A stretch of DNA of 64,000 bases from Dimorphilus gyrociliatus (Eukaryota; Animalia; Annelida). Positions 13,701-64,000 of this stretch are shown in pieces (position 1 is the first letter of the stretch; each line of letters opens with the position of its first letter). The translations under genes and the position numbers were made by a program. The DNA lies in the NCBI GenBank assembly GCA_904063045.1, contig CAJFCJ010000053.1:1-64000 (forward strand), in the 5' to 3' direction. The notes under the pieces were generated by a model that was not told the origin of the DNA, made no database searches, and saw only the letters and a program-made list of their open reading frames with translations.

Positions 13701-14183
13701 GCTGAACTCCCGAATACGAAGGCTAAAATATTTAATGAGGATGGTAATGGTAAATCACTGTATTCACTTTACTATTACACCAAAAAGGATAAAAACACAT
13801 ATGAATACACACATATTGAAAGTCTAGATTTCGATATAGGCATCATCAAACAGAATTATAAAGTGGTTAATCAATGTAAAGATCCGCCTCTCCCTTCTCG
13901 AAACGTATTACTCTTAGTTATCATTGTGATGTCTTGCGCAATGGGAGTAATTGTTCTAATTGCTTGTTCTTTCGGAATATATAAAATTGTATCGTTTTTT
14001 TCTCGCACAAGACGCCCAAAAGAAGTAATCAGAAATCAAACAAACTTGGAAATTCACAACTGGATTAGTCAAACGAATGACATGGCTAGACCAAATCATC
14101 AATTGCGTGGAGATGATGATTCTATAGCATTCGAAAGTGTTGTTCATTCGGCTCCAAGTGATACGAAAGTTAGTTTTATCTGA
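10733..14183 (+). CDS. Single-pass membrane receptor with two tandem Venus-flytrap (ANF-receptor / mGluR-like) domains
   Basis: Exons 10733-10958, 11030-11169, 11228-11400, 11454-14183 join in frame across GT-AG introns of 71, 58 and 53 bp. Signal peptide; two VFT motif sets (GILGPTTS...FPNFFRVVPPD and IIGTESS...FPNFLRTVPSD); one hydrophobic helix; tail ending VSFI. Confidence 0.85.
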
Positions 14184-16974: not shown

Positions 16975-19135
16975 TAGGTTAGGTTAGGTCTTGGGGTTAG
17001 GGATTAGCACAATCAGTACAGACTGGTAATCCCAAAAGTGCACACACACTTGTAACCAAGATTTGGCTAAGGGTTGGTTTGGCTAATGAGGAGTTGCTAT
17101 CTTAAGTAGCAATTCCCCAGCCTAAGCTGTAACTATCTTCAACAAAATCACTTACAAATTCTCCACAAGGGTGAAGAGAACCTTTATTTAGCAACTGTAA
17201 CAATTCACCAATTAAAAAATACTCACAATATTTCAGACGTATTCCTCCTTTATCAAGTGAGAGGGGAAAAGTGGCTGGTTAGATTACCACCAGACTGATC
17301 TCTGAGAGGCTTACTATATCTTAGGATAGGTACTGGTTCAATCCCACACTTTTTTCGCTACAAATCACATACTTGGTAGTCAGTAAAGCAAGTCGACCAC
17401 TGACGAAAGTTGAAATTTCAACTTGCTCCAATTGTTATGAAATTTTACACAGTGCTAGGGTACCTTAGGGTACTATGTAGCATAAGGTCTGTAGACCCAT
17501 GTTAAACTTTCAACCCCTTATATATATCAGACACACTTGTTCCTGTATGTAAGGAATGCACTGAGAGATGATTGAAGGTAGAGGTTATGGTTACATTAGA
17601 CTGCTCATGTATGATTGTCAATGGGTTGTCTTTGTGTTGATTGGGAAACCAGAAGGGACCTTTTGTTGGGGAACTTTTGTTCACTGCCAACTGTCAACCA
17701 TCTGTTCTCTCATAGAGAGGTGTCTCCCCACAAATTACCCCATTTTTTATTTTAACAATTGTTCAGAACAGGTCCCATGTATATCCAGTCTGTACCTTTG
17801 TCTCTGCTAAGGTATGTGTTGGTTCCATTATCTTAGGTTAGGGTTAGTTGTAAAGTTTCACTAATTTGTATCTTTTTAGGGGGCTATAGCTTAGGGTTAG
17901 GATATAAGAACCAGATGTGGTGTTTTTGTTGGGGAACTGTTTGTTCACTGCCAACTACCACAACCTGTTTCCCATTAAAGAGGTGTTCAATCCCTACTCA
18001 GCCAATAACTAGCCCTATTAATTTTCATTCACTGTCAATTTCTCTCTGTATCTCCAATAGGAGATTAATACCTGCAAAACTACTATCCTGATCATCCCCC
18101 ACCCAGCTATTGGCCATGGTGAGAATTGTGTCATTGCTGTTGTCCAGGCTCTCTATGTTATTCACAATAGAGAATTTGTTTTGTGGTTTATTGAAGACTG
18201 TTTTAATATGCCACCATGGGGATGGCCAACATTCTAATAGATTCAGAGTGTTGGTATTATCCTCTTGAGGTGGACCTTCAGTTCTTCCCTTTACTATAAG
18301 GCTACCCAATGATCTCCCCAGTTTCAAGGCAATAATAGGCCTAATCACCTTCAGTGGACTGTCATCATTAAGAGCACTCCAGTGGTGCTTAAGTATTCTA
18401 TTTAGTTTATACCAAGGACTTGGATGGTAGACCACTAGTGGTACTATAGTAGTACTGTAGCAACCATGATCCTCATTTAAGCCATAAGGAGTAACTGTAT
18501 TAGCCTCTTTGATGTACCTTGCTTCTAAAGTCTGTAGGGTCTTCTCTCTGTTAGGATCTTCCTCAGGAATGGAATCACAGACCCAATAAGTCATCTGATC
18601 TATTCCATGTTTTCAAAAATGATCAGAGACCAATTTATTGGATCCATTCCTCACATCCCCTTTGTGGTTGTTGATTCTATCCCTTAGAGTTCTAGTGGTA
18701 AGACCCACATACTGTATTTCACATAGGGTACATTGGATAATGTAAATTATCCAACTAGAGGTACAGTCAAAGTCTCCCTTGACTCTGAACCATTGGTTAC
18801 TGCCAGTTGATTGCCAAGTGTTAGTTTTCCTAACCTTCAGACACACTAGGCATCTCCTACCACTGCATGGTTTCATACCTTCAAACTCTTGCTTCTCAAT
18901 TTCAATCCTCTTAGTAGCTTTTAGCCATGCCTCTTTGAACATTGATTTGGTATAGCCCATATCTTTGTTTAAATTCCTAAGATCATTGAGTTGTCCCTTT
19001 GCTGTATCAATTTTTGAGCAATTTCTGAGATACCTAAGAGCTTGTGCAAATAAAATTCCTTTAATGGTGTTTTTGGGATGTGCAGACTTGGGGTTAAGTA
19101 GTCTTCTACTGTCTGTAGGTTGAAATTGATCTTTA
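16975..19135 (-). mobile_element. 5'-truncated GIY-YIG Penelope-like element, inactive copy
   Basis: Reverse complement of 42650-44312 plus 45238-45718. The ORF is broken by CGA>TGA at 18613-18615. The 3' end is CCCTAACCCCAAGACCTAACC. Confidence 0.9.
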
Positions 19136-20940: not shown

Positions 20941-22651
20941 TTACTTCTGATTAGGTTTTTGTAATGTTGAACTAGATACTAAGATCTAAGTTCTGATGAA
21001 AGTTGAATAACTTCCACCAAAGTTTCAAGAGATTCCACAATGGTATGGAATGCAAGAGTAAGAACACTCTGTACAAGCAAGACTATCTACAACTGATTGA
21101 TGAAAAATGTGTGTTGAGTTTATGTTTTAATTGTTTGATGGTTACTAAGCATAGTTGACCTACCATGATTTCGTCTTCCCCTTTGCAAAGACTCGTCAGG
21201 GTCATTTTTAGAAGATAGCTTCACTTACTGCTACCTTTGAAGGGGAGGCTAGGATCATTTCTGCAATTGTGTCCTGCCTTGCATTTTATTTTAGTGGGAT
21301 GATTGTGTTTTAGAGTTTACATGTTTGTAATTTTTATTTTCAAACAGATTTTTTTCATTGTACAATGTTTGAGTTATGTAGACTGTAAAAAGTATATTTA
21401 TATTTGTCTGATAAGTCTCATTGCAACAATGAAGAAATGCCTATGTTTAATGAATTAATTGTGAAAGTATATGGTTTTTACTTGACAGAGAAACAACAAT
21501 TACTTCAAAGAAACACTATTGTACCTTTCTTTGAACAGATAAATTATAGGAATGTATAACTCACTTTGGTTTTCTTACACCTTTTGTTCTGAAAATTTCT
21601 TCCTAATGCAGCCTGTAGAAGGTTTTTGGGTTATTTTTGTCTTTGTTTTGTTGTTTTTTGAGGCTGATTTCTTTTTATGATAGGATTTTTTTTCAACTGA
21701 TGATATGTGGCTTGTTGTTGAGTTTTTATAGGTGGTGGTTATGTAATTGACATATGTCAAGATATTGCATTTTTTCTTGAAGGGCATGTTTTACTATGTA
21801 AGTCCTTCCTGGGATATGTCTGTTGACCATCTGTTGCTTCTATATGGGAAAGTAAATACAAGGGATTTATGATGGACCTACAAATTTAATGAAGTATAAT
21901 AAATGTATATTTTTTGGTCTAAACAAACACAACATCAAAATGGACTAATATAATGTTTGTTTTCTAAAATTGCTTTTTTCTTCTTATGCTTGATAAAAAT
22001 ATTCATTTGAAATATAAACATGCAAAGAATTAATAATTTTGATGGTTGAAAGTAACACTTCTGATTAATTTTACTGTTGATTTGAAGCTTGGAGAATTGG
22101 TCTGTTTATTTTCTTTTTTCTTCCAGTTCTACTTTGTTGTTGTTGAAAGACTTCTTTACACTTGACCATAATTTCATTTGTAATCAAGTGTTGAACAATA
22201 TTTCTCAAAGAAGATATCTTTCCAGGCAGAACAGTACCATGAAAAGGATCTCCTCTTATGATGGTATTAATATCAATAATTTTTGTAAACATGTTGTTCA
22301 AGTTTTCAGATTGTGAGGTTGGTTGTTGATGGAGATCACTTTTTTTGATGTTATATTGCATAAATAATAAGCATTCATTAGTAACTCCAGTGCTTTTATA
22401 CAAAGCTTTAAAATTATCGTCAGCATCATTAATGGTGTTAAAGGGAATGTGAAGTGCTGTTATATCACTTTTTATTTTCCATTTGGATATAATTTCTTTA
22501 CAATTTTGAACAGTTAAGCCAGAAATGTTTATAATGAGAACAGTTCCAAAATAGCTGATGTTTTTTTTAACATCTTCTACCTGAAGTAAATATAAGTCAC
22601 CCAAACTTTCATCACTTAAAAGAAGTAAATTAATTTTGTTGGGAAATCACA
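20941..22651 (-). mobile_element. HHR family-1 element, copy A (SGNH-like ORF, 3' region, HHR, tail); runs into the gap
   Basis: ORF 22071-22604 is homologous to 35936-36570 and 48230-48457. Downstream blocks, the HHR and the tail are shared with 36940-37395 and 48700-49790. Confidence 0.8.
21156..21204 (-). ncRNA. Hammerhead ribozyme, minimal type I, family 1
   Basis: Minus strand reads UGACC-CUGACGA-GUCUU..AAGAC-GAAA-UC-AU-GG-UA-GGUCA. Confidence 0.85.
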
Positions 22652-23307
22652 NNNNNNNNNNNNNNNNNNNNNNNNNNNNNNNNNNNNNNNNNNNNNNNNN
22701 NNNNNNNNNNNNNNNNNNNNNNNNNNNNNNNNNNNNNNNNNNNNNNNNNNNNNNNNNNNNNNNNNNNNNNNNNNNNNNNNNNNNNNNNNNNNNNNNNNNN
22801 NNNNNNNNNNNNNNNNNNNNNNNNNNNNNNNNNNNNNNNNNNNNNNNNNNNNNNNNNNNNNNNNNNNNNNNNNNNNNNNNNNNNNNNNNNNNNNNNNNNN
22901 NNNNNNNNNNNNNNNNNNNNNNNNNNNNNNNNNNNNNNNNNNNNNNNNNNNNNNNNNNNNNNNNNNNNNNNNNNNNNNNNNNNNNNNNNNNNNNNNNNNN
23001 NNNNNNNNNNNNNNNNNNNNNNNNNNNNNNNNNNNNNNNNNNNNNNNNNNNNNNNNNNNNNNNNNNNNNNNNNNNNNNNNNNNNNNNNNNNNNNNNNNNN
23101 NNNNNNNNNNNNNNNNNNNNNNNNNNNNNNNNNNNNNNNNNNNNNNNNNNNNNNNNNNNNNNNNNNNNNNNNNNNNNNNNNNNNNNNNNNNNNNNNNNNN
23201 NNNNNNNNNNNNNNNNNNNNNNNNNNNNNNNNNNNNNNNNNNNNNNNNNNNNNNNNNNNNNNNNNNNNNNNNNNNNNNNNNNNNNNNNNNNNNNNNNNNN
23301 NNNNNNN
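22652..23307. other. Assembly gap (656 N)
   Basis: Run of N. Confidence 1.
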
Positions 23308-23600
23308 TAATGGTATGTAGATATGTCATTGAACAGGAAAGTGTGTTATAATATATTTTGAATGTTTTATTCACATGGTTCATATTAGTTTGAAGAATAA
23401 GGAGTCAAAATCACATTTAAAATACCCAGTTAAATGAACATCCCCTACAATTGCTGATGATTTTAAAATTTTTATGTACAAATTCTGATATACAGTATCA
23501 TAATACATAGCACTTTCAATATGATATATATTAAAAAAAAACCTGAAGAAGTGAATTCCCTATTGGAATCCTTCAACATCTCTGTAGGTGTAGGTTAATA

Positions 23601-23657
23601 GACCCTGATGAGTCCTTGGTCATAAAAATAGAGAGGAGGACGAAACCGTGGTAGGTC
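23601..23657 (+). ncRNA. Hammerhead ribozyme, type I, family 2
   Basis: GACC-CUGAUGA-GUCCU..AGGAC-GAAA-CC-GU-GG-UA-GGUC. Confidence 0.9.
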
Positions 23658-24735
23658 AAGTAGGTAGGAAAAAAATTTAAGAAAAAAATTTTTGAAAATT
23701 TTTTGAAAAAATTTTTTCTGTTGGAAATTGTTTTAAAATGGATTTTGGTGTGTTTTTTCTTTGACTACTTCCCAAAATCAACTGGGACTCTTGAAATGTG
23801 AGAATCTGTTTCTCTTTTTTGATTTAATCAAAAAAAAAACCTTTCCAAACCCCAACAAGTAAAGAGAATGTGGGATGAGAGGAGCAAATACATAAGCCTT
23901 AATCAATGACTAAAAACAAAACTTTTTCCATGAGATTGACTTTTTTCATTCAAAATTAAATTTTTGACTTTAGCTTTCAAAATTTTTTCTTTTTACTTTA
24001 AAAAGGGATAAAGATTCTTAAATATGTGACTGTGGTGTAATTAACATTTTTGGTATATTGTTTGAGTTTGTTGTTTGATAATGTCTTGCTTTAAAACCAA
24101 ATGATGAAATTCTTTAGAGTCAGTATACACTTATGGTGATTTTAAATTTCTGATGGTAGTAGTAATATATCTTTGTACATTTTTGATTACTTTTGTAAAA
24201 GCTTGTATAGTTTTGTACATTTTTGTATTTTTTAAAATATTGCTTAAAATAAGTTGTTGATGTTTTTATCATGGTGATTTTAAATTTTCTCATGTTTTAG
24301 CTTGAGTATGAGTTTTTGCTTGAGTATGAGTTTTAGCCTGAGTTTGAGTTTGTTTTTAGTTTGATTGTGAGTTTAAATTAAAATTTGAGTTTAATTTGTG
24401 TATTAAACTGGTTTTAATTTGATGTAAATATGGTTAGTAGTTTACAAATTTCTTTGTGATCTTTATAAATGTTTCTATATTCTTCCCAAATCTTTTACAA
24501 TTCTAAAATTATAAAAATCCCTATTAGTAGTATATATTTTTATTAGTTGAATATATAGTTTGTAGAGAACATTTTAAATATTCTCAGTAACTAACCTTTG
24601 TCTTAAGCTGAAATTTAAAAAAATACTTTACTTATCAATCTACTTCCAGTATAAACACCACCATATTTTACATTAAAACATCTCACCAATTTTAATATCA
24701 CTCACTTCAAAAACTCACATATATTCTCTTCGTTC

Positions 24736-25139
24736 TTTTCCAATCCATTCATTAGCCAAAACAATGAATCATAACTGGCTCAAATAAATGAATGTTGGAA
24801 AAGACTCTTTCAACTACCAATACCATAAATTGTAATCTTAATTCACTACATGGAATAATCCTTCCATTCCAGTAACAAACATAAATCATAAATCAATAAA
24901 GGAATTAGGAATTAAACCTCTCTATTCAGCATACAAAACACTCTTCCCAATCCATTCATTAGCCAAATCAAACAATCTGGAATTAACTAAATGAATGTTG
25001 GCAAGAAACTTTTACAAACAAAAACAGATTACCTAAGGCTTTCACACATTTACTTACAAATAATTTATTTAACCCACTTTCCAATCCATTCATTAGCCAG
25101 AACAACCTATCACTTGGCAAAGTAAATGAATGTTGGAAA
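24736..25139 (+). ncRNA. Three repeated ~62-68-nt hairpins (24736-24803, 24943-25005, 25078-25139)
   Basis: Each has a CCAATCCATTCATTAGCCA 5' arm and an AAATGAATGTTGG 3' arm around variable loops. Repeated at ~62620-63030. Confidence 0.55.
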
Positions 25140-25804
25140 ATATAATACAAGAAAAACAGTTTAGTCTTCAAACAATATTATTTAATAATTTTCAAATTAA
25201 CAATCCTCTAATCTTTAGCCATAAAATTAAATTAACCATACTTTCTCATAATACAACATATGTATCACACTTCATTCATTTACACTCACTTATTTATATA
25301 CTTTCAATTAATTAACCAATTCCTTACACATACTTAATTCATCAACTAGCCATAAATAATAATACAATTCATATTTATTTTTTTCACTTTTTCAATTTTG
25401 AATTTTTACTTTTATTTAAACTTTTATTGTTATTCCAATCCTGGTTGCTACTATTTACCCAACTTATTTTATTTTATTCTATATCACTTTTCTCATTTTT
25501 AGGTCTGCAATTTTTGTTTTTTCTGTCTTTGCTGTTTTCCAAACTGCCAGTATATATATCCCCTCAATTTACTGTTATTATTCCTTACACTTTGATTCAA
25601 GCCACAGATGCTTTCTTTAATAACTTGTTAATTTAAAAAGTGTTAAACTATTTTGGTTTCTTATTTTAATTTTTAATTATTTTTCAATTTAATTCCAAAA
25701 TTTACCTCACAAGAATCTTTATCAACAAACAAATAAATAAATCAAAAATCTGGAGAGAAACTTCTTATTAAGATTCTCAAACCTCTCTTTCATGCAGCTT
25801 AGTA

Positions 25805-25863
25805 GACCCTGAAGAGTCCCAGGTTTAAAAATTTAGTAGAAGGGGGACGAAACCAGGTAGGTC
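25805..25863 (+). ncRNA. Hammerhead ribozyme, type I, family 2 (CUGAAGA variant)
   Basis: GACC-CUGAAGA-GUCCC..GGGAC-GAAA-CC-A-GG-UA-GGUC. Confidence 0.8.
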
Positions 25864-26053
25864 AAGTAGGTAGGAAAAAAATTTAAGAAAAAATTTTTGA
25901 AAATTTTTTGAAAAAATTTTTTCTGTTGGAAATTGTTTTAAATGTCGATTTTGGTGTATTTTTTCTTTGACTGCTTCCCAAAATCAACTGGGACTCTTGA
26001 AATGTGAGAATCCTGTTTCTCTTTTTTGATTTAGTCAAAAAAAACCCTTTGCA

Positions 26054-26082
26054 AACCCTAACCCTAACCCTAACCCTAACCC
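26054..26082 (+). repeat. Interstitial telomeric repeat (TAACCC)n
   Basis: About 4.5 perfect units starting where other copies of the element read GCAAACCCC. Confidence 0.9.
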
Positions 26083-35932: not shown

Positions 35933-37110
35933 GAAATGATGACATCTTTCACAGAGATTGGAGTGAATCTAAGAGAAGAGGAAGTTGAAAATCTTATGAA
36001 AATTCAACAGCCTGGAGTTGAATTAACAAACAATTATAATTTGCTTCTGCTCACAGATGGCAGTTTGGGTGATTTAGATTTGCTTCAAATAGAAGATGTT
36101 AAGAGAAATATCAATTTTGGTGGAAATATTTTAATTATAAACATTTCTGGTCTATCATTTAAAAATTGCAAAGAAATTTTATCAAAATGGAATATAAAAG
36201 CTACAGTTGTAGCCCTTCATATTCTTTTTGATATCATTAATGATGTTGATGAGAATTTTCCAGATATTTACACAAACAATGGAAATTTTAAAGAATGTCT
36301 CCTATTTATAAAATACAATGAAAAAAATTATATAAATAATCAAGTAGCACCACCAAAAAATTTACAAAAAATGTTCACAAATGTTTTTTATATCAATAGC
36401 ATTATAAGAGGAGATCCTTTTCATAGATGAATGCAGCAGGGAAAGATCTCTTCATTAAGAAATGTTGTTCAACAACTGATTTTTAATGAAATTTTAGTGA
36501 ACACAAAAGAAATAATGGTTCAGCAACAAAGAAGGACTGGAAGAAGGAGATTAAATAGACAAAGATATCAGTGAGAATTGCACAAATCATTCATATTATA
36601 TATTATTGCTTTCCATGTCTTTTTTATGCAAACATATTATATTATATTTCATTGAAAAAACATTCATATAATAACTATGTATTCATATTAGTGCAGGATA
36701 CAAATTTTACAAACAAAAAAATGACAAAGCAGCAATCTAATTATGTCACTTAAAAGTTAAATATATTATTGTGCAACATGTTTGTCATATTTGCAACCTA
36801 GATATTGAAATATCAGTCCATATGAAAGTGAGGGAAGCTCCAGTGTTTTCATTTAAGAATCATTTTTGTTTATCTATAATATTCTGAATTAAATATGTTC
36901 TAATTGATATACTTTGAAGCAATTCTTTCATTAACACTATAAGATCTATCAGACAATTTGGATTTTATATTCTACTCTCAAACATTATACATAACCAAAC
37001 ATTTAAAACAAAAAGAATTACAACAAAAATTCATGCAAGGAAGGATACAATTATAGAATTGGTCCTATCCTCCCCTTCAAGGTAGCAGTAAGTGAAGCTA
37101 TCCTCTGAAA

Positions 37111-37160
37111 TGACCCTGATGAGTCTTTGCAAAAGGGGAAGATGAAACCATGGTAGGTCA
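37111..37160 (+). ncRNA. Hammerhead ribozyme, minimal type I, family 1
   Basis: UGACC-CUGAUGA-GUCUU..AAGAU-GAAA-CC-AU-GG-UA-GGUCA. Confidence 0.85.
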
Positions 37161-37737
37161 ACCAAACTTGGTTCCATTTCACCTAATACTAAATATATAC
37201 TACATTAAGACATTAAATCATTAATCAACTTGAGATGTGAAGACTACTTGATTCATATTGTGCAATAACTTCTTACTCTTGCATCTCACAATAATGGGGG
37301 ATCTCCTGAAACTTTGTTGGAAGTTATTCGACTTTCATCAGAACTTAGATCTTAGTATCTAGTTCAACATTACAAAAACCTAATCAGAAGTAAGGAGAGT
37401 CAAGGGGTTTGACGAACAGTACAAGTTGATTTCTATGTCTGATCATCCAGCTTACAAAAAAATTAAACAAAAAATATTTCAAAATACAACAATACTCATA
37501 TGTTTATTCATACAAACAAGCATACAATTATTACAAAATTCAACTTCCACAGTTGATATTACAATAAAACACATCTATACATCATTAGACATACAGTTAC
37601 AAAAAATTATCTCTTCCATTCAATCTATGCACATTCATCAATCTTATGACAAAAATAAAATGCAAGGCAGGATACAATTGCAGAATTGGTCCTAACCTCC
37701 CCTTCAAGGTAGCAGTAAGTGAAGCTATCCTCTGAAA

Positions 37738-37787
37738 TGACCCTGATGAGTCTTTGCAAAAGGGGAAGACGAAACCATGGTAGGTCA
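37738..37787 (+). ncRNA. Hammerhead ribozyme, minimal type I, family 1
   Basis: UGACC-CUGAUGA-GUCUU..AAGAC-GAAA-CC-AU-GG-UA-GGUCA. Confidence 0.9.
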
Positions 37788-42445: not shown

Positions 42446-42464
42446 TAACCCTAACCCTAACCCT

Positions 42465-52857: not shown

Positions 52858-53129
52858 TTTTTTTGGCTTGAGCCTATAGGTATAGTTTGATTTTTTAACT
52901 GTTGTTAAAAAAAATTAGAAAGAAATAGCAAAAACAGTTGAAAACTGTTTTAAAATGTATTTGTTTTTCCTTTGTATGTTTTTAATTTTAGTTTAAAGAC
53001 ATTTCTTTTTTTCTAATTTTTATATAGCTTCTTCTTAAATAAAACATTTTTTAAACAAAAAATATTAAAACTTTTCTTTCAATTAACTTTTACAATTTTG
53101 ATTCATTTTAATTTGATATAGCCTCATTC

Positions 53130-56100
53130 TGTCATTAATTTTACTTCAAATTTCATCAAAATCAGCCAGGCAGTGCTGAGATATAGATTCTTATAAATGT
53201 TCTATTTTAACACTGTTATTGGCTTACATCAATCAAAAATATTTGTCATAAAAAAATCAAATTTGTTAATATTTAAGTTAGAGCTTTCAAATTTGGTGCA
53301 TATACTAATATCACTACGCCAATCTCAAATCTTTTTACAGAATTCAGTTATCTCTTACAGTTCCAGAGTTATGGCACCATCAAATTATGCTTGTTATTTC
53401 TTACATATAGGCCTATAGGAAATATTCATCATGGCTGGACTAACTCTGTTGTTAATTAAGTTACATGTTTGTAATTCTGCATTTAGAATAGTATGATAAT
53501 GCCAATCATAAAAACACAATTCTTTTAAATATATATATAATAAAAAAATTGATGTATATAGCTTACATTTAAATATTCAGTTATAGTCCTTTTTCTTACC
53601 ATCAAGAAGTTGAAGAATAAAATATTCCTAAACCTATAAATGTACAGAAAATATATATTGTCTTTTATTTTGATTGAAGAGCATTTAGATTAGGTATTCC
53701 AATTTTGAATTTTTTTACAAAATTTAACAATCTATTATGGTTTTTCAGCAAGGGTCAGTTAATGTCATCTACATTTTCCTTATAAAGTTAGAGTTATATA
53801 CAGTATATTCTATTTGAATTCAATTATCTTTTGTAGTTTTTGAGCTACAGTGCTTCAAACTTTAATATATTTCCCTTTTATAATTCACTAAAAAAGTTGA
53901 TATTTTTCAAGTGGGATTTATTTAAATAAGGTTATGATCACATTTTTATTTCTTATTATTTCTTCTAAAAAGTTTTTTCCTTAAAGTTTAATCTTACATT
54001 ACAACTCAGTGAAAATTTTTCATTATAGAGCTGTAAAGTTTTTTTTACCTAAAACAAAAGTTAGCTAATACAATATTAATGTATTGAATAGGTTTTATAT
54101 GTTACTTTCCTCTTTCTCAAATATATATATATAATTGATTTCATTAAACATTGGAGAGATATATAAAGAATACTTTTATCAATTTAACCACAGCAAACCA
54201 AATGCTACAATTCAAGATTCCTTTTAAAAGTATATAAAAATATTCAAAAGAATGATTTCCATCAGAACCAATAGAAAAAGTTTTGGGAAGAAGAGGTGTA
54301 TAAGAAAAGGATTGAGACAATAAGAAAAATAAACATGGTAAACAAGAAAACAAGAAAAAGGAACAGGAGAAACAGAAGGAAAACAAGAAGAGAAACAAAC
54401 TCACCAAAAGGATGAGCAAGCAGAAAAGCAGAGATGAAGAAAGTGTTATTTATTTTAAAGAAATAGATATTAAAAAAAATGATAAAAATATATATTAACC
54501 AAGAAATTTGATTCAAACATTTGGTAAAAAATTATTAAACTGAGAAGAATTGATCACTCTTACAAATAACTTTTGTTTTTGGCTAAAATTCATAAAAAAA
54601 TATTAATTATAGTAAAGAATGAAAAGTAATTATTATAAATTTAATACCAACAGCAAGACAGAATTGTAAAGTTATATTATATTATATATTTACTTTAAAT
54701 TTCAATTTTGCCTTAAACTTTAATATATTTTCTTTATACAATTCATCACATTTCTATTAATATTTTTGGAATAAGAAATATTTATGTATTATGCAGAACA
54801 TCCCTCTAATTGTTATTATTTTTTCCTGACAATAATTTTAGTTCAAATTTGATCAAAATCGGCCCAGTAGTTGCTGAGATATGGATTATAAGAAACATTA
54901 TATATCAACTCTATTAAAAGCTTATATAAACAAAAATATTCGACGTTCAAAAAAACTAAATTTGTTAATATAAAAGTCAGAGCTCTGAAATTTTGTACAT
55001 ATACTAATATTAATACACCGAATCCAAATCTTTTTACAAAATTCAATAATCTCTTTTGGTTTGGGAGCTACATTGACTTGAAGTTTAATGCATTTTCTTT
55101 ATATAATTCATTGTCATAATTAATATTTTTTAATTGACAAATATTAATTGAATGTATGGAATGTCTTTATAAATGTTTGTATTATTTTCTAACAATGATT
55201 TTGGTCCAAATTTCATCAAAATCGGCCCAGTAGTTGCTGAGATATGGATTATAAGGAACATTATATATAAGCTCTGTTAAAAGTCTATATAAACAATAAT
55301 ATTCGACGTTCAAAAAAACTAAATTTCTTATTATTAAAGTTAGAGCTCTGAAATTTTGTACATATACTAATATTGATATACCATTTATAAATCTTTTTAC
55401 AGAATTCAATTATCTTTTATAGTTTGGGAGCTACGTTACGTTAAAGTTTGTATTAGAAGACTTTTTTTTTAAAAAAAAAGAAAAAAAAATTTTTCATCAT
55501 GAGTGATGTCTTAAAAAAAAAGAACGGCGGTGGTGTCTGTTAATTAGTTTCAATATTACGAACTCAATATTATTTGGTCAGTCTGCCTACACCCCTACAC
55601 ATCAAATGTAAGTAAAATTGTTAAATTACCCTGATTAATATCTGTTTTTGTAATTAATTTTTGTTGTATTTTATCTATTAAAATATGTAGAATTTTATCT
55701 GTTGCTTTTTAATTATTTTATTCAATTACTTTACTTTAAATCCCATTAATTTCTGCCAAAAGACATAAGTTACTTTTGAACACTACATTAAATGTAAGCC
55801 TATAATCATATTTTCGTCACAAAATTCAATTATCTCTTTTGGTTCAAAAGTTATCGCAACTTTATTTTTTCGTCGATACTTTGTATTTAGGCCTTAAAAA
55901 ATATTCGTCATCTGAAAACTAACTTTCTTATTAGTTAGCTTAGAGCTTTGAAACTTGGTATATAGACTAATTTTGGTATGCCGATCTCAAATCTGCTTAC
56001 AGAATCCAAATATCAGTTACCGTTTTTGAGCTATTTACAATTAAATTGTTTTACAGTTTGCTGTTATAAATATTTTTATTGTTATGATATTGTTGTGTTC

Positions 56101-59100
56101 AAAAGTTAATTGTTATGAATGTAAGAGTGTTTGAATTGTATATTGGAGTTTTAGTGTGCTTTTTAATAATTTGATTGTAATTATCTGTTTTTAATTGAGA
56201 TAAAGCTTTGTTGTTTGGTAGATAGATTAATACTTTGATTATAAATTTCTGTAGTAACTACATTGATTTATTCAACTCCAACAGTTCTAAAATTTAAGTA
56301 ACACTTGGAACAAAAGTGATTAATTTAGTATTAATCTATTGAATTGTGTTTGAAAGATTTTTTCTTCTTTTCTAGAGATGCATAGTTGGTTGAGCTACCC
56401 AAAGGAAAAGCAAATCAGCCCAACATTTATTAATTTCAGTAGAGCAAACCTGATGCTACAGTTAAAATATATTTTTAGAGTATATAAAAATTATGTAAAC
56501 AACAATTTTGCTAAAACTTTTGTACCTTTTCTGATGAATCACTTTTTAACAATGTCTTTACTTGGTGATGAAAAGCTGGAAGAAGAAAAAGAATTATTAG
56601 ATGGATTCAATTTAATTGTACAGAATTTTCAAGAAGAATTAACAAAGTTATTAAAGAGATATTATGAAAAGAAAATGAACTTGAAACATTATTTTTATTT
56701 GAAACCATTGCTTCAAGCAATGGAAAATTGGCAAGAAATAGAAAAGTTACTACATTTTTTTAAAATTAAAATTTTTGGGCCTGAATCAACTGAAATAATA
56801 GCTGATGAGCTTTGTGGAGAAATAAAAAATATTTTTTATGACAATGAGCAGGAAAATCAGGAAGAACAAAATTCTGTGTTAATTAGCCAAGAGCAAGAAG
56901 AGGAACACCATCCTGAGGAACAAGTGTCAGTAGAACAAGAGTCTTCTCAGCAACAGCATCCTGAGGAACAACTGGCAGTAGAACAAGACTCTTCTCAGCA
57001 ACAGCATCCTGAGGAACAACTGGCAGTAGAACAAGAGTCTTCTCAGGAACCAGAAGAAATACAACAAGATCATGCTGAAGAATATGAGGAAGATGAAGAA
57101 CCTGTTGAGGAAGAAGAGGATGAACAAGAAGATGTAGAAGAATTTTACTATCATGAGCAGATGATGGAAGTAGAAAGAGAGGAAATTGATAAGAGTGAAC
57201 CACAAAATAATATACAACAAAGTGATACAAACAATGAAATGTACAAAGTGATCAAAGAGAGAAATGAAGAATTTTTTTTACTAAAAAACATGTGTTATCT
57301 CACAAAAATGTACAATTATTATATCAATGGGGGAAATGCAGAATCACAAAAACTCATTTTAAAATCTCTAATACCTGACCTTCAACCAACTGCTAAAATT
57401 ATTTTTGTTAGCAATTATTTTATAAATTTAACCAAAAAAGAATTTGATATCATTTTAAAGAATTTGGAGGTAAAGGATATGCAATTTATTCTTTTTAAAA
57501 AGTTATCTTTGAAAAGAATAGAAAATATTTTAATCAACTGGCACCTGGAAAAAAAGTTATTATTTTTGTTGTGAAAAAATATCCTAAAAATCTGGATTCA
57601 ACTGGAATTTTTGAAAAATACCAAGAAATAACCAACAAGGTATTTCTTCAAAAGAATTTTCTTCCTTATAAAATGGAAAGCCTTTTTAAAATTGCTAGAT
57701 TCAATTTTATAGATTTCACCTTTAAAAATTATAAAAAAGAGCAAACTTGTCTCTTAAAATTCATGAAAAAATTTTTAAAACAATTGTATAGACAATAACT
57801 TTATTCATTTCTCTTACTTTTATATGTTTTTAATACTAGATTATAGAGATTTCTTTTTTTTTTCCAATTTATATTACTTTTTTCTTTTTAATACAAATTG
57901 CTTTTAAAACAAAAATTACCCAGCCTTTATTCATTTTTTCATTTTAATTTACAATACTTTAATATATTCTTATTCTGCCAATAATTTTGCTTCAAATTTG
58001 ATCAAAATCAGTGCAGTAGTTGCTGAGCTATGATTTTCTTTCAACATTGTAATTTAACACTTTTTTTGGTATATATATACAACAAAAATATTCGTCATAA
58101 AAAAATCAATTTGTTAATATTTAAGTTAGAGCTTTCAAATTTGGTGCATATACTAATATCACTACGCCAATCTCAAATCTTTTTACAGAATTCAGTTATC
58201 TCTTACTGTTCCAGAGTTATGGCGCCTTCAAAATTTGTTTATTATTTCTTACATATAAGCAGCCAATAGAAAATATTTGTCAGGGATGAATTAAATCTCT
58301 TAGGAATTAACATACATCTTTGTTATTCTGTACATAGAATAATATTACTACACTGTTCATAAATCTTTTTACAGAATTCAAGTATCTCTTATAGTTTGAG
58401 AGCTACATTTTCTTAATATTTAATGCATATTCCTTATATAATTCATTATAATAATTAATGTTTTTTAAATGACAAATACTTAATTAATGTACTGAATGTC
58501 TTTCTAATTGTACATATTTTTTTCTGACAATAATTATGGTTCAAATTTGATCAAAATCGGCCCAGTAGTTGCTGAGATATGCATTCTTTTGAATGTTGTA
58601 CTTTAACACTGTTACAGGCTAATATAGATAAAAAAATATTTGTCATAATGTACTTTGTTGTATTGTAATTGTAGGAAGTCCTAGCTCGTCACTATCAAAT
58701 TCGTCCTCTCCAATCATTTACCAATGTGCCAAAGTACTGGTCCAAATAGAACCTTTCAAGTTCGTCCACAAGTAGTCTTAATAAATGTAATTCCAGTAAA
58801 AAATTAACCAACAAACACCAGTATTTCATTCAAAGAATATGTATTTGAGTAAATGAGTTTCTAGTTCTAAACAAGCAAGTTTGAACAACTAGCTGACGGT
58901 TAGAAAACTGAACTATCAACTGTTAATTTTGTAGGGTTTATATACTCTTTTAAGGGTTGATAGTTCACAAATTTCAATGTTCACAAAAACAAAAGTAACA
59001 TTTGAAGACAAAGAAAAGTTCTAAATATGGTCATGTTTTTATTTGTTTTCCTCTTCTAAATAATAGTTGAATTTCTCAGGTTGGAGAGTTGCATAAGATG

Positions 59101-60850
59101 TAACAATTTTAGTAGGACAAGTCCAACAATCAAGAAAACATGTAGATTGTATATTTGACCGTTTTTATATTCTACCTTAATAATGATATTCAATTGATTG
59201 AGTTAGTAAATTTAGCATCAGCATATAAGGAGGAAGTATATCTGATTAATGCATGTTAAAAAGAACAGTATTGTGTATACAATACTGTTGAATAGTGAAT
59301 ATAATCTAACCTTAGAATTTAAGCATAATTGATAATTAATTGAACTAGTTTTAGTTCGAAATCATAAATTTATGGATTAATAAATTGTAATATTAATGCT
59401 AGGTTGCAAATAGCAAATATTCTTTATATAATTCAATAGGTTTTATTACTGCATAATGTGTATGCACTGCCCTATGCGAAACTAGGTCACTACTGCTTAT
59501 CTTTATCAGTGCTATCTGCATAGTACAATACTGGTTCAATACTACTTCTCTATTGTAGAATATAGCTGACGAATGTATGTGTACACATAAAAAAATTAAA
59601 TTTGTTAATTTTTAAGATAGAGCTTTCAAATTTGGTACATAAGCTAATATTCTTACACCATTCTCAAATCTTTTCACAGAATTCAATTATCTCTTATGGT
59701 TTCCTAGCTAGGTTACCTTGAAGTTTAGTAGCATCTTCCTTATATAATTCATTATATAATTTTTTTTTTTAAAATGGAAAATATTGTGTTTGTGTAACTA
59801 ATATATTTCTAATTATCCATGTCTTCTTCTGCCAATAATTTTACTTCAAATTTCGTCAAAATCTGCCAGGTAGTTGCTGAGATATGGATCTTTTTTAATG
59901 TTATGTTTAAACTCAGTTGTATGACATAAAAATAAAACATTTGCCAAAAAAAACTAGATTTGTTATCAATTATGATAGAGCTTTGAAATTTTGTACATAT
60001 ACTAATATAGGTATTCTAATCTCAAATCTTTTTACAGAATTTTGTTATCTCTTATAGTTTTTGAGCTACGTTGCCTTGAAGTTTAGTGCATCTCTTTTAT
60101 GTAATTCATTAAATAATTTATTTTTTTATATAAGTTACTTTTGAACAGTACATTAAATGTCAGCCTATAATCATATTTTCGTCACAAAATTTTTATTCTG
60201 TTATTGATTAAGTTAAAGCTTTCAAATTCTGTACATAGATTGATATTATTACGCCTATATCAAATCTTTTTACAGAACTCAATTATCTTTTATGGTTCAA
60301 AAGATATGGCGCTGTCAAGTTTTATTCATTATTCTTTATTTGTGAGCTTTATGAAATATTCGTCAGGGTTAAACTAACTCTGTTATTAATAATCATAAAG
60401 CTTTCAAAGTTGGTACATAGATTAATATTAGTGGGCCTATTATAAATCCTTTTACAGAATCCAAATATCTCTTTTAGCTCAAAAGTTATGGCAACTTTAT
60501 ATTTTAATTGATACTTTGTATATAGACCTACAAAAAACATTTGTCATCTGAAATCTAACTTTGTTATTACTTAACTTAGAGCTTTGAAACTTGGTATATT
60601 GACTATTTTTGGTTTGCCAATCTCAAATCTGCTTACAGAATCCAAATATCAGTTACTATTAGAAGTTAAGGTGTTTTACAGTTTGCTATTATAAGGAAAT
60701 TAGAAACAATTCCAACAGAGTGTTTATGTAGAAAAATTTTCTACCTACCAGAATGGAAAGTACATTTAAAATAGCCAAACTGCAGTTTATTGACTAATTG
60801 TTGTTAATTAAGATAGAGATTTGAAATTCAGTACATACACTAATACTATA
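53130..60850 (+). repeat. Region with about 11 copies of a ~180-bp-period repeat family
   Basis: Recurrent AGAGCTTT(C/G)AAA.TT.GT...ATCTCAAATCTTTTTACAGAAT near 53280, 54980, 55340, 55940, 58130, 59620, 59980, 60220, 60400, 60580 and 60815. Confidence 0.75.
56378..57574 (+). CDS. Intronless hypothetical protein with an acidic Glu/Gln-rich repeat region
   Basis: 398-codon open frame with HPEEQ(V/L)(S/A)VEQ(E/D)SSQ repeated three times; no recognisable domain. Confidence 0.55.
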   Translation: MHSWLSYPKEKQISPTFINFSRANLMLQLKYIFRVYKNYVNNNFAKTFVPFLMNHFLTMSLLGDEKLEEEKELLDGFNLIVQNFQEELTKLLKRYYEKKMNLKHYFYLKPLLQAMENWQEIEKLLHFFKIKIFGPESTEIIADELCGEIKNIFYDNEQENQEEQNSVLISQEQEEEHHPEEQVSVEQESSQQQHPEEQLAVEQDSSQQQHPEEQLAVEQESSQEPEEIQQDHAEEYEEDEEPVEEEEDEQEDVEEFYYHEQMMEVEREEIDKSEPQNNIQQSDTNNEMYKVIKERNEEFFLLKNMCYLTKMYNYYINGGNAESQKLILKSLIPDLQPTAKIIFVSNYFINLTKKEFDIILKNLEVKDMQFILFKKLSLKRIENILINWHLEKKLLFLL

Positions 60851-61472
60851 ATGCTGATATCAAGTTACAACAAACTCTTATCTCTCTTTAACATGTTTGT
60901 AGAACTTTCTCACACTCAGATTTAATTTGATTATCAGTGATTTTAAAGTTTACTAACTAACTTCATGTTTCCACATTGGTGTTATATAATTTTATCTAGG
61001 CCAGATTAGCTTATGGCATGTTCCCACAGGATTTTCCATGTGTCTTATATATATTATAAATGTTTTTTTCACAGAAATCATTTATAGTTTGAAGATTAAG
61101 GAGTCAACATCACCTTAAAAATAGCTGGTCTTATGAACAACTTCTACAATTCCTTTCAAAATATACATCCTTCAATGATATAATGGTATGTAGATATGTC
61201 ATTGAACAGGAAAGTGTGTTATATATATTTTGAATGTTTTATTCACATGGTTCATATTTAGTTTGAAGAATAAGGAGTCAAAATCACATTTAAAATACCC
61301 AGTTAAATGAACATCCCCTACAATTGCTGATGATTTTAAAATGGTATGTACAAATTCTGATATACAGTATCATAATACATAGCACTTTCAATATGATATA
61401 TATTAAAAAAAAACCTGAAGAAGTGAATTCCCTATTGGAATCCTTCAACCTCTCTGTAGGTGTAGGTTAATA

Positions 61473-61529
61473 GACCCTGATGAGTCCTTGGTCATAAAAA
61501 TAGAGAGGAGGATGAAACCGTGGTAGGTC
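61473..61529 (+). ncRNA. Hammerhead ribozyme, type I, family 2
   Basis: GACC-CUGAUGA-GUCCU..AGGAU-GAAA-CC-GU-GG-UA-GGUC. Confidence 0.85.
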
Positions 61530-63708
61530 AAGTAGGTAGGAAAAAAATTTAAGAAAAAAATTTTTTGAAAATTTTTTGAAAAAATTTTTTCTGTTGGAAA
61601 TTGTTTTAAATGTCGATTTTGGTGTATTTTTTCTTTGACTGCTTCCCAAAATCAACTGGGACTCTTGAAATGTGAGAATCCTGTTTCTCTTTTTTGATTT
61701 AGTCAAAAAAAAACCCTTTGCAAACCCCAACAAGTAAAGAGAATGTGGAATGAGAGGAACTAATACATAAACCTTAATCAATGACTAAAAACAAAACTTT
61801 TTCCATAAGATTGACTTTTTTCAATTCAAAATTAAATTTTTTGACTTTAGCTTTCAAAATTTTTTCTTTTTACTTTAAAAAAGAGATAAAGATTCTTTAA
61901 TATGTACCTGTGGTGTAATTAACATTTTTGGTAAATTGCTAGAGTTTGTTGTGTTGATAATGTCTTGCTGTTAAAACCAAATGATGAAATTCTTTAAAGT
62001 CAGTATACACTTATGGTGATTTTAAATTTCTGATGGTAGTAGTAATATATCTTTGTACTTTTTTGATTACTTTTGTAAAAGCTTGTATAGTTTTGTACAT
62101 TTTTGTATTTTTTTAAAATATTGCTTAAAATAAGTTGTTGATGTTTTTATCATGGTGATTTTAAATTTTCTCATTGTTTTAGCTTGAGTATGAGTTTTTG
62201 CTTGAGTATGAGTTTTAGTCTGAGTTTGAGTTTGTTTTTGAGTTTGATTGTGAGTTTAAATTAAAATTTGAGTTTAATTTGTGTATTAAACTGGTTTTAA
62301 TTTAATGTAAATATGGTTAGTAGTTTACATATTTCTTTGTGATCTTTATAAATGTTTCTATATTCTTCCCAAATCTTTTACAATTCTAAAATTTATAAAA
62401 ATCCCCTATTGTAGTATATATTTTTATTAGATTGAATATATAGTTTGTAGAGAACATTTTAAATATTCTCAGTAACTAACCTTTGTCCTTAAGCTGAAAT
62501 TTAAAAAAATACTTTACTTATCAATCTACTTCCAGTATAAACACCACCATATTTTACATTAAAACATTTCACCAATTTTAATATCACTCACTTCAAAAAC
62601 TCACATATATTCTCTTAATTTTTTTTCCAATCCATTCATTAGCCAAAACAATGAATCATAACTGGCTCAAACAAATGAATGTTGGAAAAAGACTCTTTCA
62701 ACTACTAATACCATAAATTGTAATCTTAATTCACTACATGGAATAATCCTTCCATTCCAGTAACAAACATAAATCATAAATCAATAAAGGAATTAGGAAT
62801 TAAACCTCTCTATTCAGCATACAAAACACTCTTCCCAATCCATTCATTAGCCAAATCAAACTATCTGGAATTAACTAAATGAATGTTGGCAAGAAACTTT
62901 TACAAACAAAAACAGATTAACTAAGGCTTTCACACATTTACTTACAAATAATTTATTTAACCCACTTTCCAATCCATTCATTAGCCAGAACAACCTATCA
63001 CTTGGCAAAGTAAATGAATGTTGGAAAATATAATACAAGAAAAACAGTTTAGTCTTCAAACAATATTATTTAATAATTTTCAAATTAACAATCCTCTATT
63101 CTTTAGCCATAAAATTAAATTAACCATACTTTCTCCATAATACAACATATGTATCACACTTCATTCATTTACACTCACTTATTTTATATACTTTCAATTA
63201 ATTAACCAATTCCTTTACACATACTTAATTCATCAACTAGCCATAAATAATAATACAATTCATACTTTTATTTTTTTTCACTTTTTCAATTTTGAATTTT
63301 TACTTTTATTTAAACTTTTATTGTTATTCCAATCCTGGTTTCTACTATTTACCCAACTTATTTTATTTTATTCTATATCACTTTTCTCATTTTTTAGGTC
63401 TGCAATTTTTGTTTTTTCTGTCTTTGCTGTTTTCCAAACTGCCAGTATATATATCCCCTCAATTTACTGTTATTTATTCCTTACACTTTGATTCAAGGCC
63501 ACAGATGCTTTCTTTAATAACTTGTTAATTTAAAAAGTGTTAAACTATTTTGGTTTCTTATTCTTATTTTTTATTTTTAATTATTTTTCAATTTAATTCC
63601 AAAATTTACCTCACAAGAATCTTTATCAACAAACAAATAAATAAATCAAAAATCTGGAGAGAAACTTCTTATTAAGATTCTCAAACCTCTCTTTCATGCA
63701 GCTTAGTA

Positions 63709-63769
63709 GACCCTGAAGAGTCCCAGGTTTAATAATTTAGTAGAGAGGGGGACGAAACCACGGTAGGTC
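63709..63769 (+). ncRNA. Hammerhead ribozyme, type I, family 2 (CUGAAGA variant)
   Basis: GACC-CUGAAGA-GUCCC..GGGAC-GAAA-CC-AC-GG-UA-GGUC. Confidence 0.85.
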
Positions 63770-64000
63770 AAGTAGGTAGGAAAAAAATTTAAGAAAAAAA
63801 TTTTTTGAAAATTTTTTGAAAAAATTTTTTCTGTTGGAAATTGTTTTAAATGTCGATTTTGGTGTATTTTTTCTTTGACTGCTTCCCAAAATCAACTGGG
63901 ACTCTTGAAATGTGAGAATCCTGTTTCTCTTTTTTGATTTAGTCAAAAAAAAACCCTTTGCAAAACACAAAAGAAAAAATAGACCTGAGGAACCTAATAG

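Follow-up and report, generated by a model that had tools for sequence, protein, structure and literature searches.

The stretch of DNA analysed here (the window) comprises 64,000 nt of the annelid Dimorphilus gyrociliatus (contig CAJFCJ010000053.1, positions 1 to 64,000, forward strand). It contains four type-I hammerhead ribozymes (HHRs), all on the + strand, which were found by scanning for the core and helix II (CUGANGA...GAAA core, helix II of at least 5 bp, GUA cut triplet) and by reading the sequence. Their cores start at 23605, 25809, 61477 and 63713, and CUGA(U/A)GA, GAAA and a GUA before the cut are present in 4/4. Cleavage is predicted after positions 23653, 25859, 61525 and 63765, which gives cut-to-cut units of 2206 nt in copy 1 and 2240 nt in copy 2. 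An earlier note on this DNA had proposed the same hammerheads, cut sites and sizes, and all were borne out. The features of the two copies are the following.

23308..23600, + strand: copy 1, unique segment 5' of HHR1, 97% identical to 61181-61472.
23601..23657, + strand: copy 1 HHR1, type 1, covariance model 93.3 bits; parts GACC / CUGAUGA / helix II GUCCUU-GAGGAC / GAAA / helix III ACCGUGGU; predicted cut after A23653, followed by GGUC.
23654..23853, + strand: copy 1 tail 1, 200 nt, ending in the seed CCAAACCCC.
23854..25804, + strand: copy 1 non-coding body, beginning with AACAAGUAAAGAG, without ORF.
25805..25863, + strand: copy 1 HHR2, type 2a, covariance model 86.2 bits; CUGAAGA, helix II GUCCC-GGGAC, helix III ACCA-GGU; predicted cut after A25859.
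25860..26058, + strand: copy 1 tail 2, 199 nt, the 3' end of the element.
26059..26082, + strand: (TAACCC)4, reverse-complement telomeric repeats joined to the seed; attachment junction.
52959..61472, + strand: copy 2 upstream part, with repeat arrays of ~180/360 nt, ORF1 and ~0.7 kb of unique sequence, up to HHR1; 52959 is the start of the part described, not a defined 5' end of the element.
56378..57574, + strand: ORF1, 398 aa, an orphan protein with helical N- and C-terminal domains and an acidic repeat linker.
61473..61529, + strand: copy 2 HHR1, type 1, covariance model 90.0 bits; predicted cut after A61525.
61526..61728, + strand: copy 2 tail 1, 203 nt.
61729..63708, + strand: copy 2 non-coding body.
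63709..63769, + strand: copy 2 HHR2, type 2a, intact, 96.8 bits; helix III ACCACGGU; predicted cut after A63765.
63766..63964, + strand: copy 2 tail 2, ending at GCAAA, followed by non-telomeric sequence.

With a covariance model built from 31 instances, the HHRs of the window scored 86-97 bits (E 1e-18 to 1e-21), and at least 143 HHRs were counted genome-wide. Three base pairs of helix II showed compensatory double changes, both sides having changed. These scores, the genome-wide count and the compensatory changes indicate that the window HHRs are not chance matches. In the alignment, 94.8% of the cells were paired, as compared with 23-54% in slid controls; across the HHR set, pairing amounted to 99% for helix I, where the open end lies, and 91% for helix II. 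No hammerhead was returned by an Rfam scan of the entire window, at the gathering threshold or at E up to 1, and a narrow search of 63711-63767 gave RF00163 at 18 bits, under the gathering score of 34. A stable helix III was not found in the monomer, in which it consists of just an A-U and two C-G pairs with a 2-nt loop. This minimal helix III is the known variant of Penelope-like elements (PLEs), and the kinship with PLE hammerheads that had been claimed for these type I ribozymes stands. One of the two HHRs is defective in each window copy; helix III of copy 1 HHR2 carries a 1-nt deletion, and the closing pair of helix II in copy 2 HHR1 is G.U, not G-C.

Each of the four HHRs is followed on its 3' side by a tail of about 200 nt, which ends in a telomere-like seed (GCAAACCC). 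The direct repeats that had been noticed after the HHRs were confirmed in this way, 23589-23856 matching 25793-26062 at 90% (copy 1) and 61447-61738 matching 63684-63977 at 92% (copy 2). The whole block 23308-26055 matched 61181-63964 at 97%; a run of N at 22652-23307 hides the 5' continuation of copy 1, and 23308 is no true boundary. The lack of coding capacity in the interior was also corroborated, as no ORF of more than 104 aa was found within the 2206/2240-nt units, the longest being 104 aa (antisense, low complexity) and 78 aa. No transcript contigs were on record when sought with two spurious ORFs of the unit. The body of copy 1 contains one 18-nt tandem repeat and three hairpins of ~70 nt (24733-24802, 24940-25009 and 25075-25142, with z-scores of -6.2, -2.2 and -3.0, respectively). 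Between lineages, the ends of the body are conserved and its middle is not, being fast-evolving; the cut-to-cut length is conserved, at 2065-2255 nt across six copies.

The repeats upstream of HHR1 in copy 2 belong to families D1, D2, D4 and D5. The order of repeats, unique segment and type-1 HHR recurs in diverged copies on contigs C51, C221, C44 and C121, and the copy on C35 is collinear with window copy 2 from 56113. ORF1 is the sole ORF of at least 100 aa 5' of HHR1 in window copy 2 and in the two other loci checked. Its homologs, which are 31-95% identical and mostly open frames, were found on six contigs (C134, C114, C44, C80, C121 and C51), where they sit 1-3.5 kb 5' of type-1 HHRs on the same strand. 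ORF1 matched no Pfam family above cut-off (weak CH_2 only), the atlas search and a word-based protein search were both without match, and its AlphaFold model (pLDDT 40) was unusable. The basic, short form of the element thus described comprises repeat arrays, ORF1 (~300-400 aa), repeats, unique segment, HHR1 and a 200-nt tail; the long form, of which the window holds two, has in addition the 2.0-kb body, HHR2 and a second tail. In a short form on C80, telomere repeats lie directly 3' of the HHR1 tail.

ORF1 has no reverse transcriptase (RT) domain and no RT ORF was found in the element copies examined, so that the dependence on an RT in trans assumed in the earlier note was judged right. Pfam analysis of the other ORFs of the window revealed a truncated PLE with GIY-YIG and no RT, and a coordinate-based genome search with PF00078 for an RT partner was swamped by unrelated RTs. 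Elsewhere in the genome, there are intact PLE ORFs of 789-883 aa.

The statement that the unit is present twice holds within the window but not genome-wide, where a survey found at least six long copies and dozens of fragments. Architecture is common to subfamilies that are 65-89% diverged. The genomic copies are 5'-truncated at many positions and have a common 3' end, joined to (CCCTAA)n; TAACCC repeats are joined within a few nt of the common seed in most type-2 tails and in some type-1 tails. Copies stack head-to-tail at chromosome ends, and two of them lie directly beneath terminal telomere repeats. On C27, terminal (CCCTAA)n is followed by a 1-kb 5'-truncated copy, (CCCTAA)4 and the next element, and at the right end of C121 about 780 nt of telomere repeats cap a copy whose truncation point corresponds to window position 60775. 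The 5'-truncations, the common 3' end on (CCCTAA)n and the two copies beneath terminal telomere repeats indicate end attachment in the style of Athena/Terminon elements. The 2.2-kb interval, composed of tail, body and HHR2, forms the non-coding 3' module ('U2') in an RT-less family of telomere-attaching retroelements, new copies of which join chromosome ends through pairing of the tail-end seed with the TTAGGG overhang.

Among the genomic copies, none starts exactly at a cut; the one that comes closest (C35:150531) begins 7 nt before it, after degenerate telomere repeats. No tandem U2-U2 copy from one RNA was found among them either, and an apparent tandem on C27 was rejected as a 1.x-mer of one RNA, the joined units belonging to different subfamilies. 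The junction of HHR2 (...CCACGGUA) with the GGUCAAG tail, followed by the AACAAGUAAAG body, occurs in no alpha-subfamily genomic copy examined.

The interval had been read in the earlier note as an unusually large retrozyme. Part of this reading stood, since the unit is HHR-bracketed, non-coding and related to PLEs, but it is not self-contained. The copies neither start nor stop at the HHRs; they extend upstream into the unique region, the repeat arrays and the 398-aa ORF, and end ~200 nt past the second HHR at the telomere-like seed. Plant retrozymes carry type III HHRs in true LTRs and possess a PBS, a PPT and a target-site duplication, and this class was rejected because the HHRs are type I, the repeats share the part after the cut only, and the 3' flank is telomeric, not a duplicated target. 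Animal retrozymes are short monomers of 170-400 nt in tandem arrays (PMC7229834), whereas the present unit of 2065-2255 nt occurs once per element and was not found in U2 arrays; the non-coding nature and the co-occurrence with PLEs (no ORF above 104 aa; PLE ORFs to 883 aa) agree with metazoan retrozymes. A rolling-circle origin of the present long copies and an ordinary pseudo-LTR (pLTR) were both rejected, the upstream HHR and its flanks being unlike the downstream ones. The repeat preceding the HHR that is expected of a PLE pLTR was not found, since identity is 63-76% before the cut and the flanks further upstream are unrelated.

The two HHRs of an element represent position-specific types, which are kept across subfamilies, and their helix III hexamers are mutually complementary (CCGUGG with CCACGG). 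The minimum free energy folds of the monomers were not hammerheads; the co-fold of HHR1 with HHR2 gave the canonical double hammerhead, in which the two molecules share a helix III of 8 bp, and had an energy of -40.4 kcal/mol versus -28.6 kcal/mol for two monomers. Cleavage as dimers is on record for PLE-type HHRs (PMC7761336, its reference 84; PMC7229834). One covarying pair lies behind the complementarity of helix III, and the variants CCAUGG, CUGUGG, CCACAG and CCAAGG are transitions, which sometimes break it.

Further information on the cut sites came from the tails. In window copy 2, C114 and C51, identity between both tails of an element is 100% over the stretch that runs from no more than 4 nt before the cut (4 nt in window copy 2) down to the seed, while the sequences preceding the cut are just 63-76% identical. 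Between lineages, the tails are 9-22% different. Every combination of HHR type and tail type occurs. Among 10 related copies, tail identity followed the downstream body (Mantel test, rho 0.55, p 0.0016) and not the upstream HHR segment (rho 0.18, p 0.20), and the C27:2216 unit has a different upstream HHR with unchanged linkage of tail and body. The tails of the neighbouring B-type pair 37104/37731 are 82% identical, indicating that tail regeneration is not general. Tail identity could alternatively have arisen by gene conversion that stopped where homology ends, or the tail may be under strong selection. The complementary, co-folding position-specific HHR types, the identical tails bounded at the cut and the tracking of the body by the tail are new in the present analysis.

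This pattern in the sequence suggests that ribozyme cuts are used during copying of the element. Because the HHRs are position-specific and complementary, the tails identical and the tail type linked to the body, the cut-to-cut RNA may be the copied unit. An HHR-to-HHR RNA as the functional unit had been proposed in the earlier note, and the identical tails with their boundary at the predicted cut, together with the complementary helix III, support it. We regard an RT-less telomere-attaching element with the predicted ribozyme-cut RNA as template as the best explanation (probability of about 0.6). RT would be supplied in trans by the intact Penelope-like elements of the same genome. The two minimal-helix-III HHRs would pair via their complementary helix III (CCGUGG/CCACGG) into a double hammerhead, which would cut after both GUA sites and release a 5'-tail-body-HHR2-3' RNA. 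The 5' end of this RNA would stay paired to the helix I strand of HHR2, in the geometry of a nicked circle. The telomeric overhang would then prime reverse transcription at the seed, and the single tail would be copied; RT would cross the joint at the cut site, by ligation to a circle or by a template jump, proceed through HHR2, body and tail again, and finally move onto an HHR1-ended RNA. One tail would thus be copied twice and the HHR-tail joints re-created. This full scheme, in which a heterodimeric double HHR would excise the 2.2-kb tail-body-HHR2 RNA, the nicked or closed circle would be a heritable, telomere-primed template whose tail is copied twice, and RNAs would be joined at the cuts, is put forward tentatively, as possible rather than probable.

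A rival proposal, which we find rather unlikely, is that the region is a plain long 3' UTR and that the whole long form is one uncut linear RNA, reverse-transcribed from the 3' seed. The HHR folds would then serve only to let the RT recognise the 3' end or to expose it, a role proposed for Terminons, the internal HHR1-tail would be left over from two elements stacked at an earlier time, and the identity of the tails would stem from gene conversion or copy-choice between them. It accommodates the uncut HHR2 and tail 2 of 5'-truncated copies, the uncut HHR1 of long copies and the lack of any copy starting at a cut; furthermore, the short forms show that the HHR1 tail is a working 3' end, and the Terminon literature assigns the HHR a structural or pre-processing role (PMC6431247). 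However, separately inherited tails cannot yield 100% identity in three lineages differing by 9-22%, and the boundary of identity lies 4-6 nt or less from the scissile bond in 3/3 lineages. The reshuffling of HHR types and tail types, the fact that the tail type follows the body and not the preceding HHR, and the retention by position of two HHR types with complementary helix III across subfamilies also argue against it.

The unit as a true retrozyme, i.e. a 2.2-kb autonomous-like circular RNA replicon undergoing rolling-circle RT independently of the adjacent ORF1 element, appears improbable. The HHR-bracketed, non-coding structure, the PLE-type HHR and the identical tails fit with it, as do the long tandem arrays of smaller HHR units (periods of 606-839 nt) present in the genome. 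Yet tandem arrays of the 2.2-kb unit were not seen, the upstream HHR differs in type and flanks, which is not expected of a rolling-circle product, and each full unit is preceded by an ORF1 element or by the HHR-tail of another unit. Moreover, known animal retrozymes measure 170-400 nt (PMC7229834), and the unit is larger by a factor of 5-13. A non-mobile origin (subtelomeric segmental duplication, assembly artefact or spliced coding gene) is hardly credible. The copy on C35 does share ~7.6 kb at 98% with window copy 2, with a rearranged flank, and resembles a segmental duplicate or haplotig, but dozens of copies differ in their flanks and 5' truncation points and have telomere-repeat junctions, subfamilies diverged by 65-89% retain one architecture, and the unit is without ORFs, with a fast-evolving body middle.

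As a telomere-attaching element, the family is close in behaviour to the Athena/Terminon elements, which were reportedly described by Gladyshev & Arkhipova in 2007 and by Arkhipova et al. in 2017. They are endonuclease-deficient Penelope-like elements of bdelloid rotifers, and the summaries of them in PMC8557442 and PMC6431247 describe a 3' end on reverse-complement telomeric repeats, a hammerhead near the 3' end, 5'-truncated copies capped by telomeric repeats, head-to-tail chains at chromosome ends, and accessory ORFs and host genes between units. The telomeric 3' junction, the capped 5' truncations and the terminal stacks were all found in D. gyrociliatus, as was the hammerhead close to the 3' end; accessory ORFs and intervening host genes are likewise shared. 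Here, however, only ORF1 was found and not the RT of the Athena clade, the telomere is TTAGGG rather than the TGTGGG given in those summaries, and the seed lies ~200 nt past the HHR cut, whereas that of Terminons directly adjoins the HHR (PMC6431247). Two position-specific HHR types around a 2-kb non-coding module, and the annelid host, are further differences.

Metazoan non-LTR retrozymes (Cervera & de la Pena 2020, PMC7229834; Li et al. 2026 preprint, 10.64898/2026.07.22.740005) are similarly non-coding, with type I HHRs related to PLE hammerheads; they are non-autonomous and thought to depend on PLE RT, their short-helix-III variants act as dimers (PMC7229834), and the cut-to-cut RNA is the proposed unit. 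They consist, however, of 170-400-nt tandem monomers dispersed in intergenic DNA, while the D. gyrociliatus unit measures 2.07-2.26 kb, occurs once per element between two different HHR types, and lies within an ORF-bearing, telomere-attached element. The pLTRs of canonical Penelope-like elements, reportedly treated by Cervera & de la Pena in 2014, offer another parallel. They are direct repeats with a minimal type I HHR around an internal region, and 5' truncation is frequent. A pLTR duplicates, at the upstream end, some of the element's 3' portion (Craig et al. 2021, PMC8557442), so that what precedes the HHR should be repeated as well, whereas only the part after the cut is shared here. HeT-A of Drosophila telomeres belongs to the non-LTR (LINE-type) elements; it has a poly(A) tail, lacks ribozymes, and its host has no telomerase repeats. 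The present family resembles it only in the way it works: both are telomere-specific, have a single ORF that does not code for RT and a 3' region that is long and non-coding, use RT provided in trans (here presumably), and form terminal head-to-tail arrays (PMC5537684).

With this family, telomere-attaching HHR retroelements are known not only from rotifers but also, in an RT-less and HeT-A-like form, from an animal whose telomeres are of the ordinary TTAGGG type. What the minimal hammerhead does in Penelope-like elements and Terminons is called 'still a mystery' in PMC7761336. Should the excised cut-to-cut RNA indeed be the template, the family would provide the first sequence-level evidence for a function of Penelope-type hammerheads and would be akin to retrozymes, though of giant size and targeted to telomeres. 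From the identical tails, their boundary at the cut and the mixing of HHR and tail types follow specific, testable predictions on RNA ends, the junction and helix III. With two distinguishable ribozymes 2.2 kb apart, the element is a natural experiment, in which the inheritance of the tail can be traced on either side of the scissile bond.

Sequence reading and a motif scan found four type I hammerhead ribozymes (HHRs) in the window, all on the + strand, with predicted cuts after 23653, 25859, 61525 and 63765; the cut-to-cut intervals are 2206 nt in copy 1 of the element and 2240 nt in copy 2, as proposed in the earlier note. Its description of the unit was also borne out in that the same ~200-nt segment follows each HHR (23589-23856 vs 25793-26062, 90% identity), that a second copy lies in the window (23308-26055 vs 61181-63964, 97% identity), and that there is no credible ORF inside, the longest open frame in the unit being 104 aa. 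Each HHR contains, in order, GACC, CUGA(U/A)GA, a helix II of 5-6 bp, GAAA, a minimal helix III (an A-U and two C-G pairs with a 2-nt loop), GUA and GGUC. The downstream HHR (HHR2) of copy 1 lacks one helix III base, and the helix II closing pair of the upstream HHR (HHR1) of copy 2 is G.U. None of them matched Rfam at curated thresholds; a 161-nt search gave 18 bits with RF00163, against a gathering score of 34, as expected for HHRs with the minimal helix III known from Penelope-like elements (PLEs). In an alignment of 31 instances, hammerhead pairing was satisfied at 94.8% vs 23-54% in slid controls, and three helix II pairs had changes on both sides. Genome-wide (77.9 Mb, 349 contigs, 70% A+T), a covariance model recovered at least 143 HHRs.

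More than 100 matches were found across the genome. Six are long copies (two each on the window contig and C121, one each on C114 and C51), and an additional copy, on C35, is cut at its 3' side. Many fragments share the 3' end and differ in their starts (query positions ~1083, 1261, 1339, 1770, 1779, 1856, 1914, 2049, 2107, 2284 and others). The following features of the window bear on the organization of the element and its surroundings.

26059-26082: (TAACCC)4, directly abutting the second tail (the segment after the cut) of copy 1
40501-41772: OTU-domain ORF, just upstream of a truncated PLE ORF with a GIY-YIG domain
56378-57574: ORF1, 398 aa, the sole sizeable ORF in window copy 2

For most tails that follow a downstream-type (type 2) HHR, the junction with TAACCC repeats lies no more than a few nucleotides from a single position, GCAAACCC|TAACCC; GCAAACC| and UUGC| occur as variants. 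We read this register as the one expected if a TTAGGG overhang annealed to the seed AAACCCCAA, at the end of the tail, in a single register. Contig C27 starts with ~480 nt of (CCCTAA)n, followed by a 5'-truncated copy of 1 kb, (CCCTAA)4 and the next element; C121 ends on the right with ~780 nt of telomere repeat, which cap a copy with its 5' end at the equivalent of window position 60775, 700 nt upstream of HHR1. Copies of the element are shown to attach to telomeres at the seed, to be truncated at the 5' end and to be stacked. Copy 1 seems to start at 23308, but this position is no true boundary, because a run of 656 N (22652-23307) lies immediately upstream; the ORFs at 22616-23383 (-) and 22636-23310 (+) are artefacts of this run, which they cross. 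A copy at C35:150531 starts 7 nt upstream of the HHR cut (UGUGGUA|GGUC), directly after degenerate telomere repeats, which could reflect an RT stop at helix III or a brief jump onto an HHR-cleaved 3' end. What follows copy 2 (window-equivalent 64081-65286) is inverted with respect to C35:140635-141851, which sits upstream of the block collinear with copy 2, suggesting either a subtelomeric rearrangement or a difference between haplotigs.

Evidence that the cut matters came from the arrangement of the HHRs. Type 1 (CUGAUGA, GUCCUUGG..., helix III CCGUGG) is always upstream and type 2 (CUGAAGA, GUCCCAG..., helix III CCACGG) always downstream, across subfamilies with bodies (the ~2-kb non-coding part between the first tail and HHR2) 65-89% alike. 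The helix III hexamers of the two types complement each other exactly, and the variants CCAUGG, CUGUGG and CCACAG are single transitions of them. The predicted folds of the monomers are not hammerheads; the predicted co-fold of HHR1 and HHR2 is a canonical double hammerhead with an intermolecular helix III of 8 bp and swapped helix I strands (-40.4 vs -28.6 kcal/mol for two monomers). Cleavage as dimers is established for minimal helix III variants (PMC7229834; PMC7761336, citing its reference 84).

The tails lead to the same site. In window copy 2, C114 and C51, the two tails of the element are 100% identical as far as the seed, starting no more than 4 nt ahead of the cut; over the 110 nt preceding the cut, identity between the HHR1 and HHR2 sides is 63-76%, and tails differ by 9-22% between lineages. 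Had the two tails been passed on independently, they could not have remained identical in three lineages. HHR types (1, 2a, 2b) and tail types (alpha, beta, gamma) occur in every combination, and one unit on C27 joins the same tail and body to a quite different upstream HHR (2c). Among 10 related copies, tail similarity tracked the downstream body (rho 0.55, Mantel p 0.0016) but did not track the upstream HHR segment (rho 0.18, p 0.20). Cut-to-cut length is conserved (2065-2255 nt), as are, between lineages, the tail and the first ~200 and last ~800 nt of the body, the middle of the body not being kept. By these comparisons the tail shows itself to be a module inherited separately, its 5' limit coinciding with the predicted scissile bond.

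To account for this, we propose that HHR1 and HHR2 would dimerise and cut both sites, leaving as template a tail-body-HHR2 RNA in which the 5' end base-pairs with the helix I strand of the RNA's own HHR2. A telomeric overhang would prime at the seed, and RT would copy the tail, cross the cut-site joint via a ligated circle or a template jump, copy HHR2, body and the same tail again, and continue on an HHR1-ended RNA. Alternatively, the tails may be kept identical by gene conversion that stops where homology ends. Counting against the proposed mechanism, two neighboring units of a second HHR family (B type) in the window, 627 nt apart, have tails only 82% identical; furthermore, among the copies found none starts exactly at the cut (the nearest begins 7 nt upstream), and no tandem derived from one and the same RNA was found.

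ORF1 has homologs in six contigs (31-95% identity, mostly open), 1-3.5 kb upstream of type 1 HHRs on the same strand. It contains an acidic repeat with a 48-nt period (56904-57050), and no relatives were found by Pfam, atlas or word-based search. Upstream of the type 1 HHR, ~180/360-nt repeat arrays and a unique segment recur in this order in diverged copies on C51, C221, C44 and C121. Seven copies of a short repeat, GGACAGTTGACCCCC, stand in tandem at 52740-52858, with an inverted element end (52116-52734) on one side and the start of the ~180-nt arrays on the other. On C80, the ORF, HHR1, tail and telomere repeats follow each other without the body; therefore a short form exists beside the long form, which adds body, HHR2 and tail. 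The body holds three related hairpins of ~70 nt (24733-24802, 24940-25009 and 25075-25142; equivalents at 62620-63030 in copy 2) with the arm CCAAUCCAUUCAUUAGCC; they are stable whichever strand is folded (z down to -6.2) and are kept in diverged copies. No RT ORF was found in the element copies examined; intact PLE ORFs of 789-883 aa occur elsewhere in the genome, so that RT is available in trans.

Athena/Terminon elements are described as attaching to telomeric repeats in the same mode (PMC8557442; PMC6431247). In them, however, the telomere-complementary stretch immediately follows the HHR, whereas here the seed lies ~200 nt after the cut. The element works like a telomere adder of the Athena/Terminon type and partly like a retrozyme, and by their defining features belongs to neither; the retrozyme reading in the earlier note finds partial support. 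We class it as an element that attaches to telomeres, carries ORF1, has no RT ORF in the copies examined and contains a 2.2-kb non-coding module between two different HHRs.

The B-type HHRs of the window (37104-37169, 37731-37796 and 49486-49554 on +, 21147-21211 on -) have the helix II GUCUUUGC, a palindromic helix III (CCAUGG) and tails of ~235 nt ending in ...ACAAAAACCUAA, one of which passes into (CCCTAA)5 at 37989. B-type units also form long tandem arrays (period 606-839 nt) at C3:5251-48663, C59:123240-129654 and C195:6237-10939, and on C59 a PLE ORF, open over 883 aa, comes after the array; judged from the coordinates of the hits, the organization of these arrays appears retrozyme-like, with larger monomers. 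The truncated GIY-YIG PLE ORF (42414-43748) has a (TAACCC) cap at 42449-42463 and an inverted copy at 17463-19129 (-, 97.7%). Finally, an intron-less 904-aa ORF with an ANF_receptor ligand-binding domain (11469-14183) lies amid the stacked elements; it may be either a gene of the host or one that was captured.
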